From Macrostomum hystrix (taxonomy: Eukaryota; Animalia; Platyhelminthes), in assembly GCA_950097015.1 (NCBI GenBank), contig CATNEN010000030.1:2542001-2606000 (forward strand): a stretch of DNA of 64,000 nucleotides, given 5' to 3'. Numbering within the stretch: position 1 is the first letter of the stretch; each line of letters opens with the position of its first letter. The notes beneath the pieces are model-generated. The model ran no database searches. It was not told where the DNA came from and was given only the letters and a program-made list of their open reading frames with translations. Positions 23,825 to 52,281 of this stretch are shown in pieces. A program made the translations under genes and the position numbers.

Positions 23825-24105
23825 TCTGGAGGAGGGGAACATGAGCAGCTTGTGGAGGGGAACATGAGCAGCTTGAAGAAAGGTTATGAGCAGCTGGAGG
23901 AGGGGAACATGAGCAGCTGGAGGAGGGGAACATGAGCAGCTTGTGGAGGGGAACATGAGCAGCTGGATGAGAGGTTATGAGCAGCTGGAGGAGAGGTTAT
24001 GAGCAGCTGGAGGAGAGGTTATGAGCAGCTGGAGGAGAGGTTATGAGCAGCTGGAGGAGGGGACTATGAGCAGCTGGAGAAGGGTATTATGAGCAGCTGG
24101 AAGAG
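23825..24105. repeat. 22-bp array ATGAGCAGCTGGAGGAGAGGTT
   Basis: Direct inspection. Confidence 0.9.
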
Positions 24106-24398
24106 CTGGGGGGTAAGCTACTTCCACCAGTAATAGTACCTGGAGTAGAGCAAACTATCTGAGGTTCGCAGTGTCAACTTCTGTTTGTCAAAGATTTAGA
24201 CGAAGCAAAATGTGAAATGATGCAGAAATATGTCACAGCCTCCGCTTAACAGCTTAGGCGTAGTTTTAATTACGCTTAAGAAACATTTATTTTGGTTTCA
24301 ACCCTTTGATTGGAGTAATAGTATCGTTTTAGTATACTATCGAGTTAGGAAATTATTGAGGGTACATTATGATTCCGCGCTGTGTCCGCTCTTGATGT

Positions 24399-24876
24399 TC
24401 ACTTGCCAATGAACTCAGATAAGCGCTTCTTCACGTCGACATTTTCAACGCTTCGGTGTCGATCTAGATAAGCCGAGACGCGCTTACGGAAGGCGTTCAC
24501 AATTCTTCTGAGGCCAGAGTCATTGTCGCTGCTGCTCCGTCTACTGCCACGGATGAAGTACACGACGGGCACTTTATTTTGCATCTTCAGGCCATTGTCA
24601 ACGTCCTCCAGCGGCTCCAGAAGAATTTGATCTGCGGAAATCGTTGATTTCTAAATCTTACTAATTCCAGAAATGGTAGTCAATCACAATTGACTCAAAT
24701 ACCTTGGGTGTCAGGTTCACAATTAACAGTTGGCACAACTGTGAGCTGCAGCAACAGGCACAGTCCAAGGACAGCCTTGATCGTCGTTGTCGAACTCACG
24801 AGCACTGTAATGCAGTATTGTGAGCCGAAATGTAAACTTTAATTAGAATAAGACTCCCATTTTTAACGAACTTACT
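24399..24876 (-). CDS. Small secreted prepropeptide (111 aa), putative neuropeptide precursor releasing LSEFI-amide
   Basis: A at 24876 | intron 24875-24805 (GTAAGT...TTACAG) | exon 24804-24703 | intron 24702-24632 (GTATTT...CCGCAG) | exon 24631-24399. Protein: MLVSSTTTIKAVLGLCLLLQLTVVPTVNC-EPDTQDQILLEPLEDVDNGLKMQNKVPVVYFIRGSRRSSSDNDSGLRRIVNAFRKRVSAYLDRHRSVENVDVKKRLSEFIGK*. Signal peptide, multiple basic cleavage sites, and Gly-Lys at the C-terminus. Confidence 0.75.
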
Positions 24877-26104
24877 GATCCAAGTTGATGGCGAAATCGA
24901 AATTGCTTTTTTAACTGACAGGCTGACAATGATGGAAGCGAATAGGCAAATTTATACTCAGTTAGATCTCAGTCCAACCAATCAGATCTGAACTATCCGA
25001 TTTAGGAAATTCCATGCTAATTTCTGCGAAAATGTTGTAAAACAGCAGAAAAATAAGGGGCGGTAAATAACAGACAATCCTTTTTAATTCGCACCTGTGG
25101 CCATTTTAAGATGTTATTCTGCCGTATTGCAGCTCGAGACTCGTAGAGACTCCATTAAATTCATTTTGACCAAAACGGATGGAAGCAGGTGTATCTCGCC
25201 TATGTAAAATCCAATGAAATGATTATGAGCATTTTTTCTAAATTCCGTGTAGGCGGTTCGTGTAATCATTTTAGCAACAACTTCTATTGAAAGCCATGAA
25301 AAAAATAGTCTTTTTTGCTTTGAGTTACCCAAACTCGTAGTTAACTTTGGGTGAGAGTGAATATTTATTTAACTGACAATCAAAAAGTCAGGGCAGATCT
25401 ACATACCTGTGAGAATGCACATCTACACTTTTATTTTGACTCACTGTAAGTTATAGTAGTTTACTACAAAAAAAGATAAAATCAATAAATGTAAAGAAAG
25501 CCGAAGACCTGTATTGATATTTAATCGTGCAGAGTTCCGATTCGAGAATTTATATTATATTTAAGGCTTGGAACTGTGCAAAGCATTAACAAATTTTCTG
25601 TATGACCGAACCAACCCAGAAAGGAAATAATTGTCTTGTTTATACGCAATAAATTCCATAATTTTTTGTGTCCTACTAAAAATAAATTGTTTTAATTACA
25701 GGAAAATAGTACGTGACAGTTAAGAATTTAACTTATTAGCATAAAAATTATTATCTATCACTACTAATGAGGGTACAACTGTTATAACGAACTTCCTTAC
25801 TAGGTAATCGAGGGTAGCTAAGTGCTCCTCAACATGTGGTCAACAGCAGAGCTTTTGCTTCAAAGGTATTTAAAATATTGTCTCTTCCAAGCGCTTTGAG
25901 TGCACATTCAAATTACAGTCACTTATAGTTACGAGACAAGAAGAACTTTTAAGTACAGCTACATTTATACTCGTATATGTCAATCTTCAAAAAAAAATAA
26001 TAAAATTATGAGTACTATGGTGGATTAGTTGTTAAGTCGAATTCATAATTACGTTAATTTACTCTGCAGGCACTCCGTACCCAGCCCATTCTACACGCGT
26101 CATT

Positions 26105-26360
26105 ATACACCCACCTCAACCCACACCAACCTCACTCCACACCCACATCATTCAAAACCACCTCACTCCACACCCACCTCACTCCACACCCACCTCACTC
26201 CACACCCACCTCACTCCACACCCACCTCACTCCACACCCACCTCACTCCACACCCACCTCACTCCACACCCACCTCACTCCACACCCACCTCACTCCACA
26301 CCCACCTCACTCCACACCCACCTCACTCCACACCCACCTCACTCCACACCCACCTCCACA
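26105..26360. repeat. 16-bp array CTCACTCCACACCCAC (TRPM 3'UTR side)
   Basis: Direct inspection. Confidence 0.93.
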
Positions 26361-26419
26361 ACCGCGTAATTCAATAAAGAAGTCTTTCCATGCCCGTCCG
26401 TTTAAATTCCACCCGCTAT

Positions 26420-49354: not shown

Positions 49355-52281
49355 TTAATCGGACTTCTTAGATGACTGCCTTGTGGATAGTGCCACGTAC
49401 TTGCTGTGCGACTTGTACCACAGAGCCAGTGGAATGAAGACTGACGGCAACGACATCAGGCCGAAGGTCAGCCATTCGGTCTGCAAGGCGGAGATAGAAT
49501 CACACACTATACTCAGGGACTAGCTAGCAGTCCTCTCACTGTCCTCTCACTATCTCCCTCTCATTTTGCCCTCCCCCTCTATCTACTCTCATTTTGCCCT
49601 CCCCCTCTATCTACTCTCATTTTGCCATCTCCCTCTATCTACTCTCATTTTGCCCTCCCCTCTATCTACTCTCATTTTGCCCTCCCCTCTATCTACTCTC
49701 ATTTTGCCCTCCCCCTCTATCTACTCTCAATTTGCCCTCCCCTCTATCTACTCTCATTTTGCCCTCCCCCTCTATCTACTCTCATTTTGCCCTCCCCCTC
49801 TATCTACTCTCATTTTGCCATCTCCCTCTATTTACTCTCATTTTGCCCTCCCTCTATCTCCCTCTCAATTTGCCCTCCCCTCTATCTACTCTCATTTTGC
49901 CCTCCCTCTATCTCCCTCTCAATTTGCCCTCCCCCTCTATCTAGTCTCATTTTGCCATCTCCCTCTATTTACTCTCATTTTGCCCTCCCCCTCTATCTAC
50001 TCTCATTTTGCCCTCCCCCTCTATCTACTCTCATTTTGCCATCTCCCTCTATTTACTCTCATTTTGCCCTCCCTCTATCTCCCTCTCAATTTGCCCTCCC
50101 CTCTATCTACTCTCATTTTGCCCTCCCCCTCTATCTACTCTCATTTTGCCCTCCCCCTCTATCTACTCTCATTTTGCCCTCCCCCTCTATCTACTCTCAT
50201 TTTGCCATCTCCCTCTATTTACTCTCATTTTGCCATCCCCCTCTATCTACTCTCATTTTGCCATCTCCCTCTATCTACTCTCATTTTGCCCTCCCTCTAT
50301 CTACTCTCATTTTGCCATCTCCCTCTATCTACTCTCATTTTGCCCTCCCTCTATCTCCCTCTCAATTTGCCCTCCCCTCTATCTACTCTCATTTTGCCCT
50401 CCCCCTCTATCTACTCTCATTTTGCCCTCCCCCTCTATCTACTCTCATTTTGCCCTACCCCTCTATCTCCCTCTCATTTTGTCCTCCCTCTATCACCCTC
50501 CCCTTTCATTTTCATTCTACCGATCTTGGCTATATCCTCTTTCCGGCCCTCCACTTAATCGAACTCTTATTTGCCATGCCCTACATCACATCTTATCTTC
50601 CACATTTCTTGTCCTCATAATAATAAATATATATTAATTGTTTAAACTTTTAAATCACGTTCACCAATATCAAACGCCCTTGTTATAGCTCTTATATTAA
50701 AGGAACCAAATAAAGTTGGACTTGATTTCCCGTGTTAAAGTTAAAGTTCTACTAGAGCTGGGAGTATGTGTTACTTCGGACTACATTGTAGAATCAATTA
50801 ATGTCTAGGACTTTCTATTTTATGTTGATTGTTGAAAATAGACAGAAGACAATTAATAAAATGCGATTAAAAAATATGCTAAACGTTCCGTTCGGAAGTC
50901 ACACTAACATGTCACGGCAAAACAGGCATAGTAGAATCGCCCAGTACGTATGATTCAGCAAATTTCCTCCACTCTACTTGCTTTATGAACCGAAAGAATC
51001 GCGCCTGGCGGGCGCGCATGGGGTTGGGGTTCGGATTGAGTTTGGAATGTACATTCGCGCTATTTTTAATGTACATTGCCTGGGCCACACACTGGATAGA
51101 GAAGGATTGGTCGTGCTTATGCTTACTTGAAAAGGATAAAAGTTTAGCTATATTCCATTCCCTATAGCGCCCATGTTTTTAGAGGATTAGGATTATAACA
51201 GCATACGGTTAAAATGGCAGAACAGTTCTTATCGTGAGAACAGCCTATTATTATATTTCTAGGCGGTATTTCGGGGGAAGCATTGCACCAGGAGCATAAG
51301 TAGAGACGTTACGAGTATTATTATTTTAACTCAAAATGAACTTGGCTGATTCACTAGCGTTATTAATACTGCTTACTAAATGTTGCGTACAAAAATGAAT
51401 TCGTGGATCACTAGATACAATTTCGTCATCGTAATTCTCCAACTATAATTTAACTTTGCCGTTTTGACTGTTTTGCTGTTGCTAAATGACAAACATCCAA
51501 AACTGCCAGAAGTAAATTTGAATTGAAAATGACTCCTGACTGTGAGGGAATAGAATTTAAAGTCTTAAGTGCTCGTACATTCTTATCGAATGTAGCTAAA
51601 TAAAAACACAACTGGTCCAGAATGATTGACTCTTCCATTAATCGTAAAATAAAGCAAACTAGCAGCAAAAGAAAACTTGAAATAAAAAATCTAATCTAAA
51701 GAAAACTCACAGCCCTGGCGGAGAACTGCCGCTCGTAGGCGGCCGTGTCGTAGATGGCCACCTCGCCGAATCCACTGGTCTGGCCGACAGTGAAGCCGCG
51801 CTCATCTTCACTGGCACGGTAGCGAATTGTAGCCTGGCTAACGTTGAACACCACACTCTGAAGTGGCGTCAGCACCACCGAGTGGCTGACGTTGGCGCCG
51901 GGCGCCAGGCTAGCCCAGCGTGCCCGCAGGAGGCCGGCCTTAAGTTGGAAATAATCGCCGGGGAAGCCCTCCTCCTCTAGCTGCAGATTCTGGGCGGCCC
52001 TGTGCAGGTAGATTCGAGTGAGATAAGGGCATGCAAGGAGACTATTATTGCAGTCCAATGAGTAGACAACTTGAAGTCAATCAAACAGTTGAACAGTAGA
52101 AACTTAGAAGCACTTACTTTGAGCCAACGTTGTACAAGTCATACTGAACAGTGATGTCTTTGCCCTTGACGACATAATTGTTAAGAATTGATTTCAGTGC
52201 AATGACTTGAGCTCTTTCTTCACTTTCGGCCATGCACGACGCAACCATCAACACGAGGAGTAGCGCGCTGAATTTCCACAT
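49355..52281 (-). CDS. SSR2: Translocon-associated protein subunit beta (TRAP-beta), 192 aa
   Basis: Exons 52281-52118 (MWKFSALLLVLMVASCMA..KSILNNYVVKGKDITVQYDLYNVGS), 51999-51711 (PGANVSHSVVLTPL..YERQFS), 49480-49355 (EWLTFGLMSLPSVFIPLALWYKS..*). Collinear with known SSR2. A 5'UTR intron is likely at 52291-52372. Confidence 0.96.
49545..50500. repeat. 27-29-bp pyrimidine-rich minisatellite CCCTCCCCTCTATCTACTCTCATTTTG (SSR2 intron)
   Basis: Direct inspection. Confidence 0.95.

Follow-up and report, generated by a model that had tools for sequence, protein, structure and literature searches.

A candidate LSEFI-amide precursor with an intron-split start codon and three xSEFΦ-amide paralogues in the flatworm Macrostomum hystrix

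Can a short open reading frame that ends in a neuropeptide-like motif be traced back to a start codon that is present only in the spliced mRNA? This question is raised by an ORF of 61 amino acids on the minus strand of a 64,000-nucleotide stretch of the Macrostomum hystrix genome (GCA_950097015.1, contig CATNEN010000030.1, positions 2,542,001 to 2,606,000; hereafter the window), which a first-pass annotation had read as the end of a neuropeptide precursor. We consider it probable that the locus is a functional gene whose product is a single amidated pentapeptide of the fulicin/EFLamide (TRH-type) class, and one of four such genes in this genome.

Exons and signals of the LSEFI gene

The ORF at 24399-24584 forms the end of a longer reading frame, which is interrupted by two GT-AG introns of 71 nt each (Table 1). 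These introns and a restored frame of 111 amino acids had been proposed in the first-pass annotation, and both are confirmed: the coding sequence computed by script sums to 1+102+230 = 333 nt, or 111 codons, with the junction codons A|TG and G|AT. Only the last 61 codons of exon 3 are visible in the ORF track. After its leading TG, exon 2 translates as LVSSTTTIKAVLGLCLLLQLTVVPTVNCEPDTQ; exon 3 translates as QILLEPLEDVDNGLKMQNKVPVVYFIRGSRRSSSDNDSGLRRIVNAFRKRVSAYLDRHRSVENVDVKKRLSEFIGK, which begins with QILLEPLEDV, passes through two RR sites and closes with RKRVSAYLDRHRSVENVDVKKRLSEFIGK before the TGA stop at 24401-24399. The RR, RKR and KKR sites and the KKR-LSEFIG-K-stop ending noted earlier are all present in this translation. 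A second processed peptide, VSAYLDRHRSVENVDV, had been suggested as well, but this segment is a spacer between RKR and KKR and finds no independent support as a product.

Table 1. Features of the LSEFI gene and of its three paralogues; two dots mark positions within the window
Feature	Position	Strand	Description
Candidate TATA box, TATAAA	24951..24956	-	81 nt 5' of the exon-1 donor; from the sequence and computed position
Exon 1, ~49 nt 5' UTR	24876..24924	-	Ends in A24876, which supplies the A of the start codon
Intron 1, 71 nt, phase 1	24805..24875	-	GTAAGT...TTACAG; splits codon A|TG; donor A|GTAAGT
Exon 2, 102 nt	24703..24804	-	TG + 33 codons + G; signal-peptide exon; begins TG CTC GTG
Intron 2, 71 nt, phase 1 (G|AT)	24632..24702	-	GTATTT...CCGCAG
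Exon 3, coding part and stop	24399..24631	-	Acidic spacer, RR, RR, RKR, KKR, LSEFIG, K, TGA
KKR-LSEFIG-K	24402..24431	-	Convertase site, pentapeptide, amidation Gly, C-terminal Lys for trimming; predicted product LSEFI-NH2
Poly(A) signal, AATAAA	24286..24291	-	110 nt 3' of the T of TGA; ATTAAA at +131
24-copy [G/E]PVSEFLGKR gene	contig 34, 1,846,146-1,846,825	-	Tandem 30-nt units, 248-codon ORF, signal-peptide exon upstream
MSEFVG gene	contig 14		Eight units, ending KR-MSEFVG-K-stop
VSEFLG/ISEFLGG gene	contig 38, ~24,417,470-24,417,860	-	77 codons, three exons, KR-VSEFLG-KR and RRKR-ISEFLGG-stop

The start codon had been claimed to be split A|TG across intron 1, and this is what the sequence holds: A24876, joined to the TG of exon 2 once intron 1 is removed. 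The frame of exon 2 is closed on its 5' side by a TAA at 24841-24839, has no in-frame ATG of its own and, if left unspliced, runs into a TGA two codons inside intron 2. The putative 5' end of exon 1 (~24924) was placed at a TCAGC ~30 nt past the TATA box. From there to 24876 all frames are free of ATG; the spliced A|TG, which has an A at -3, would therefore be the earliest AUG in the transcript. Could the AUG be supplied in another way? About one fifth of Macrostomum genes receive, by trans-splicing, a leader whose last three bases are ATG (PMC8629364; PMC10468722). A spliced-leader start on the exon-2 acceptor was rejected: it reads ATG TGC TCG TGA and so falls out of frame, and between the upstream TAA and exon 2 no AG coincides with a codon boundary of the exon-2 frame. 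The signal-peptide frame would therefore receive its AUG solely through the cis-splice A|TG. Intron-split start codons are rare, which counts against the model.

The splice motifs of Macrostomum lignano are GT[G/A]AG at the donor and [T/C]TNCAG at the acceptor (PMC8629364), and intron 1 of the LSEFI gene fits both. The intron-2 donor, GTATTT, deviates from GTRAG; the same donor is also seen in one paralogue, at the modelled intron 1 of the 24-copy gene. An in-frame alternative donor for intron 2, AATT|GTGAAC, lies 18 nt upstream, and its use would drop six residues. Exon 2 encodes a Lys-bearing n-region and an h-region, LGLCLLLQLTVV, with a hydrophobic core of 12-14 residues and a likely cleavage at VNC|EP. 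Its best 12-residue Kyte-Doolittle window reaches 2.43, and sites that agree with the (-3,-1) rule follow residues 26 and 29, with small residues before E30. On these two values (2.43 and the VNC|E site), the hydrophobic signal peptide claimed earlier is upheld by a heuristic call (Kyte-Doolittle plus the (-3,-1) rule, not SignalP).

The exon structure, the motifs and the paralogues (Table 1) can be read directly from the DNA, and the original observation of exons, split ATG and motifs is confirmed. In all six frames of the window, the LSEFIG site is the sole match to [ED]F[LIVM]G(G)[KR*]. The 901-nt LSEFI locus occurs once in the M. hystrix assembly, which was covered by the genome searches at its full 220,453,370 bases in 42 contigs.

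Two repeat arrays lie near the gene on the minus strand of the window. A minisatellite of ~30-nt units (CCAGCTGCTCAT...) occupies 23830-24120, ~150 nt downstream of the LSEFI poly(A) signal, and gives rise to spurious S/P/A-rich ORFs on both strands. A tandem 16-nt unit (GGTGGGTGTGGAGTGA) at 26140-26375 immediately follows the stop of a TRPM2-like gene on its 3' side and presumably belongs to the 3' UTR.

Paralogues and chance expectation

Genome-wide pattern searches for SEFLG-basic and MSEFVG located three paralogues of the LSEFI gene (Table 1). The 24-copy gene, of ~308 codons, is a canonical multi-copy SEFL-amide (EFLamide/TRH-type) precursor; its exon 1 is a predicted one, and an upstream out-of-frame ATG occurs there too. 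The contig-38 gene predicts a VSEFL-amide together with an annelid-style ISEFLG-amide and has a TATAAA 94 nt 5' of its exon-1 donor. Its intron 2 is open in frame by chance, which leads to a misleading 105-codon frame in the ORF track.

Each of the four xSEFΦ-amide genes is divided into three coding exons by introns of 69-98 nt, and in each the signal-peptide exon is flanked by phase-1 introns. The phases at both introns of the LSEFI gene had been predicted without knowledge of the paralogues and equal those of the family. Intron 1 lies close to the 5' end throughout the family, after 16, 16 and 7 coding nucleotides in the paralogues and after 1 in the LSEFI gene. The split ATG is therefore the extreme position of an early family intron.

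The MSEFV gene resembles the LSEFI gene in its exon number and phases, and also has the junction G|AT at intron 2. In each precursor a Gly follows a pentapeptide x-S-E-F-aliphatic, and the sequence closes with KR-xSEFxG-K-stop. The two genes differ in copy number (eight versus one), in exon 1 (ATG plus 13 coding nucleotides versus a single A), in their unrelated spacers and in the peptide end (Val versus Ile). In BLASTP, exon 3 of the LSEFI gene matches the MSEFV gene with E=8e-5 and the PVSEFL gene with E=1e-3, and the observed scores were attained in 0/2000 and 1/2000 shuffles, respectively. Without the last 11 residues, the similarity of exon 3 to the two genes falls within the shuffle range (291/2000 and 244/2000; p about 0.12-0.15), so the likeness to the paralogues rests on those 11 residues. 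A search for a promoter motif common to the four genes gave nothing above shuffles.

How often would such features arise by chance? We ran a deliberately liberal search for upstream signal-peptide exons on the open frames in the window that span 62 codons or more, allowing an ATG or a split start and introns of 40-150 nt. It succeeded in 18 of 339 frames, and in 5 of 339 (1.5%) via a split start. Taken by itself, the exon model of the LSEFI gene reaches only about p=0.05. Single motifs are likewise at chance frequency: [KR]R-x-SEFxG has 22 matches genome-wide versus 28 in the reversed control, and SEFIG[KR] strings number 28 in the six frames of the genome versus 30 in the control. Chance is exceeded when the features are taken together: the exon model with its terminal processing motif, the flanking promoter and poly(A) signals, and an architecture that agrees with that of three paralogues. 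By a rough estimate, the joint genome-wide chance expectation for the whole feature set is well below 0.01.

Several other motif matches were rejected as genes. A KR-GSEFIG-P on contig 15 lies off-frame within a larger coding exon of another gene and is plainly due to chance, and the remaining single SEFIG/SEFLG matches in the genome are without processing context. Arrays of FSEFFG and YWEFLG (contig 2, 1,366,156-1,368,132; contig 34, 3,796,423-3,797,481) are satellites with many stops, either stop-filled or of a period that is not a multiple of three. A search for neuropeptides by motif can easily be misled by such satellites in the M. hystrix genome. Separately, for a 126-codon open frame at 51699-52076 on the minus strand of the window, the null scan built an upstream exon starting MWKFSALLLVLMVASCMAESEE..., which has the look of a true signal peptide, belonging to a different small secreted protein.

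Predicted expression and function of the LSEFI gene

From these features we infer how the gene would be transcribed and its product processed, amidated and recognized by a receptor. Transcription would start ~30 nt past the TATA box. The AUG-free exon 1 of ~49 nt would end in A, and removal of the 71-nt intron would join this A to TG, creating the first and sole usable start codon. The exon-2 signal peptide of the 111-residue prepropeptide would be cleaved near VNC|EP, and prohormone convertases would cut the propeptide at RR, RKR and KKR. A carboxypeptidase would then trim the last Lys, and the exposed Gly would be converted to the amide, yielding LSEFI-NH2. The four xSEFΦ-amide genes together would make up the fulicin/EFLamide (protostome TRH-type) family of this flatworm.

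The main rival reading, which we regard as unlikely, is that of a decaying or silent paralogue. A formerly multi-copy SEFΦ-amide gene would have lost its repeats and the original coding bases of its first exon, and its frame would be open by chance, with little or no expression and no functional peptide. Such decay would fit the single intact LSEFI copy, as against 2, 8 and 24 copies in the paralogues, and the absence of a start codon unless the transcript is spliced. However, none of the three exons contains a premature stop, the splice sites of both introns are usable, and the spliced AUG would be the first AUG in a good context; the gene keeps its KKR, its Gly and its Lys-stop, as well as TATA and AATAAA where they would be expected. 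The stretches VSAYLD, VENVD and PVVYFIRG align with repeat units in BLASTP and might be taken as relics of lost copies, but they are not significant in shuffles and were dropped. It also speaks for a silent gene that searches with exon 3 yielded no transcript-derived protein: neither a word search nor a full HMMER search (1.84 billion representatives) nor Pfam returned a homologue or a protein of that kind, and looking up the 61-aa ORF as an exact product gave nothing. These searches were run exon by exon. The same protein databases were blank, however, for exon 3 of the 24-copy gene, which is clearly real, and of the contig-38 gene, both used as control queries. The collections are evidently without these M. 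hystrix products, so the blanks for the LSEFI gene carry no weight and are uninformative on its expression or conservation.

Somewhat less likely still is that the locus encodes a real small secreted protein or propeptide of another, unrecognized class, for instance a fast-evolving reproductive secretion of the sort common in Macrostomum, in which the C-terminal SEFIG is a coincidence. The confinement of homology to the last 11 residues would agree with a coincidence, as would the chance frequency of SEFIG[KR] in six frames, and phase 1-1 flanks are generic for signal-peptide exons of genes for secreted proteins. Against this, the whole order of elements at the very C-terminus, from a dibasic site through x-SEF-aliphatic, Gly and a basic residue to the stop, is that of the MSEFV gene, the very early phase-1 intron is shared with all three other SEFΦ-amide genes, and the phases were predicted before the paralogues were known. 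That there is no gene at all, and that a chance 61-codon ORF has been extended by a chance GT-AG pair, seems very improbable: the liberal search does build a signal-peptide exon for 5% of long open frames (far fewer by split start), but chance would have to add the terminal processing motif, TATA and AATAAA at proper distances, an ATG-free 5' exon and the intron phases of the family.

Returning to the preferred reading of a functional LSEFI-amide gene, the first-pass annotation had described a single-copy TRH/EFLamide precursor. As a description of the organism's sole gene of this type it is not upheld: the 24-copy PVSEFLamide, 8-copy MSEFVamide and VSEFL/ISEFLG genes are all more canonical. 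Judged from sequence, the LSEFI gene is most likely a diverged one-peptide paralogue, the fourth, most reduced and least canonical of the four xSEFΦ-amide genes. More tentatively, the TRH-type/EFLamide system may have expanded in Macrostomum to four genes that differ at the receptor-facing end of the peptide (SEFL-, SEFV-, SEFI- and SEFLG-amide). The LSEFI gene could then be a specialized member, limited to one peptide and paired with a receptor or cell type of its own, whose translation depends wholly on splicing, the early family intron having moved into the start codon.

The start codon of the LSEFI gene is present only in the spliced mRNA, so ORF-based or ATG-anchored annotation misses the gene, which is a clear example of this kind. 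TRH-type (EFLamide/fulicin) signalling is seen as an ancient bilaterian system that, in flatworms, is thought to have been lost in planarians and parasites (PMC13551398). In the literature searched, flatworm precursors of this type are named only from a polyclad larva (PMC10396302; PMC13551398), and there is no mention of a SEFI-amide, or of SEFL/SEFV-amides in flatworms. Four such genes in the tractable genus Macrostomum would open the TRH-type system of a flatworm to ligand-receptor pairing, knock-down and cell mapping. The LSEFI gene adds to a known family and is not a new kind of system.

Comparison with fulicin, EFLamide and other TRH-type peptides

Among the published signatures of this family are the oyster motif (F/Y)S(E/D)FL-amide and a core, E-[L/F]-[L/F/V] (PMC8398477); in Platynereis the TRH-type receptor has FSEFLGamide as its ligand (PMC5818035), and fulicins and EFLGamides are classed together as TRH-type (PMC11890989). 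The predicted paralogue peptides, PVSEFL-, VSEFL-, ISEFLG- and MSEFV-amide, fit the published signatures exactly. In LSEFI-amide the S-E-F matches, and the terminal Ile is conservative but outside E-[L/F]-[L/F/V]. Like other members of the family, the LSEFI peptide is bounded by basic sites with Gly as the amide donor (KKR-LSEFIG-K-stop). Its motif recurs as SEF[L/V] in the three paralogues of the same genome, and the word and HMMER searches with exon 3 gave no orthologue from another species. The EFLamide/TRH-type assignment made at first is supported by these SEFL-, SEFV- and SEFLG-amide paralogues and by the shared exon phases.

The fulicin/EFLGa region of annelids and molluscs is encoded in one gene together with FVamide/MIP peptides (PMC8398477). 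No MIP/FVamide stretch (P-x-F-[VI]-G-basic) turned up when the window and the three paralogous loci were scanned in six frames. Such sharing is not universal for the TRH-type family, and arthropods lack it. Veenstra and Simo are said to have reported, in 2020, that arthropod EFLamide precursors may carry few copies.

The mollusc fulicin-type peptides are short and amidated with an S-E-F-aliphatic core, as LSEFI-amide is predicted to be, and fulicin is a pentapeptide (PMC11890989; PMC8398477). The mollusc and annelid genes differ from the LSEFI gene in being multi-copy and joined with MIP/FVamide by alternative splicing or read-through. Fulicin has a D-residue at position 2, a feature that DNA cannot reveal for LSEFI-amide. 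Platynereis FSEFLGamide shares with LSEFI-amide the S-E-F-aliphatic core and C-terminal amidation, the latter being predicted for LSEFI. LSEFI-amide is without the extra Gly and ends in Ile; the contig-38 paralogue, which ends in ISEFLGG, would give the annelid form. Arthropod EFLamide and crustacean GSEFLamide precursors, like the paralogues and the LSEFI gene, encode xSEF-aliphatic amide peptides, in arthropods xSEFL-amide; they belong to another phylum, their peptides end in Leu, and their sequence likeness to LSEFI is confined to the motif. Among flatworms, Fasciola is reported to possess GPCRs that cluster with TRH receptors (PMC6114109). TRH and TRH2 proneuropeptides have been described from the polyclad Prostheceraeus crozieri (PMC10396302; review PMC13551398); they are TRH-type precursors of an early-branching free-living flatworm that has more than one such gene, as M. 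hystrix probably does.
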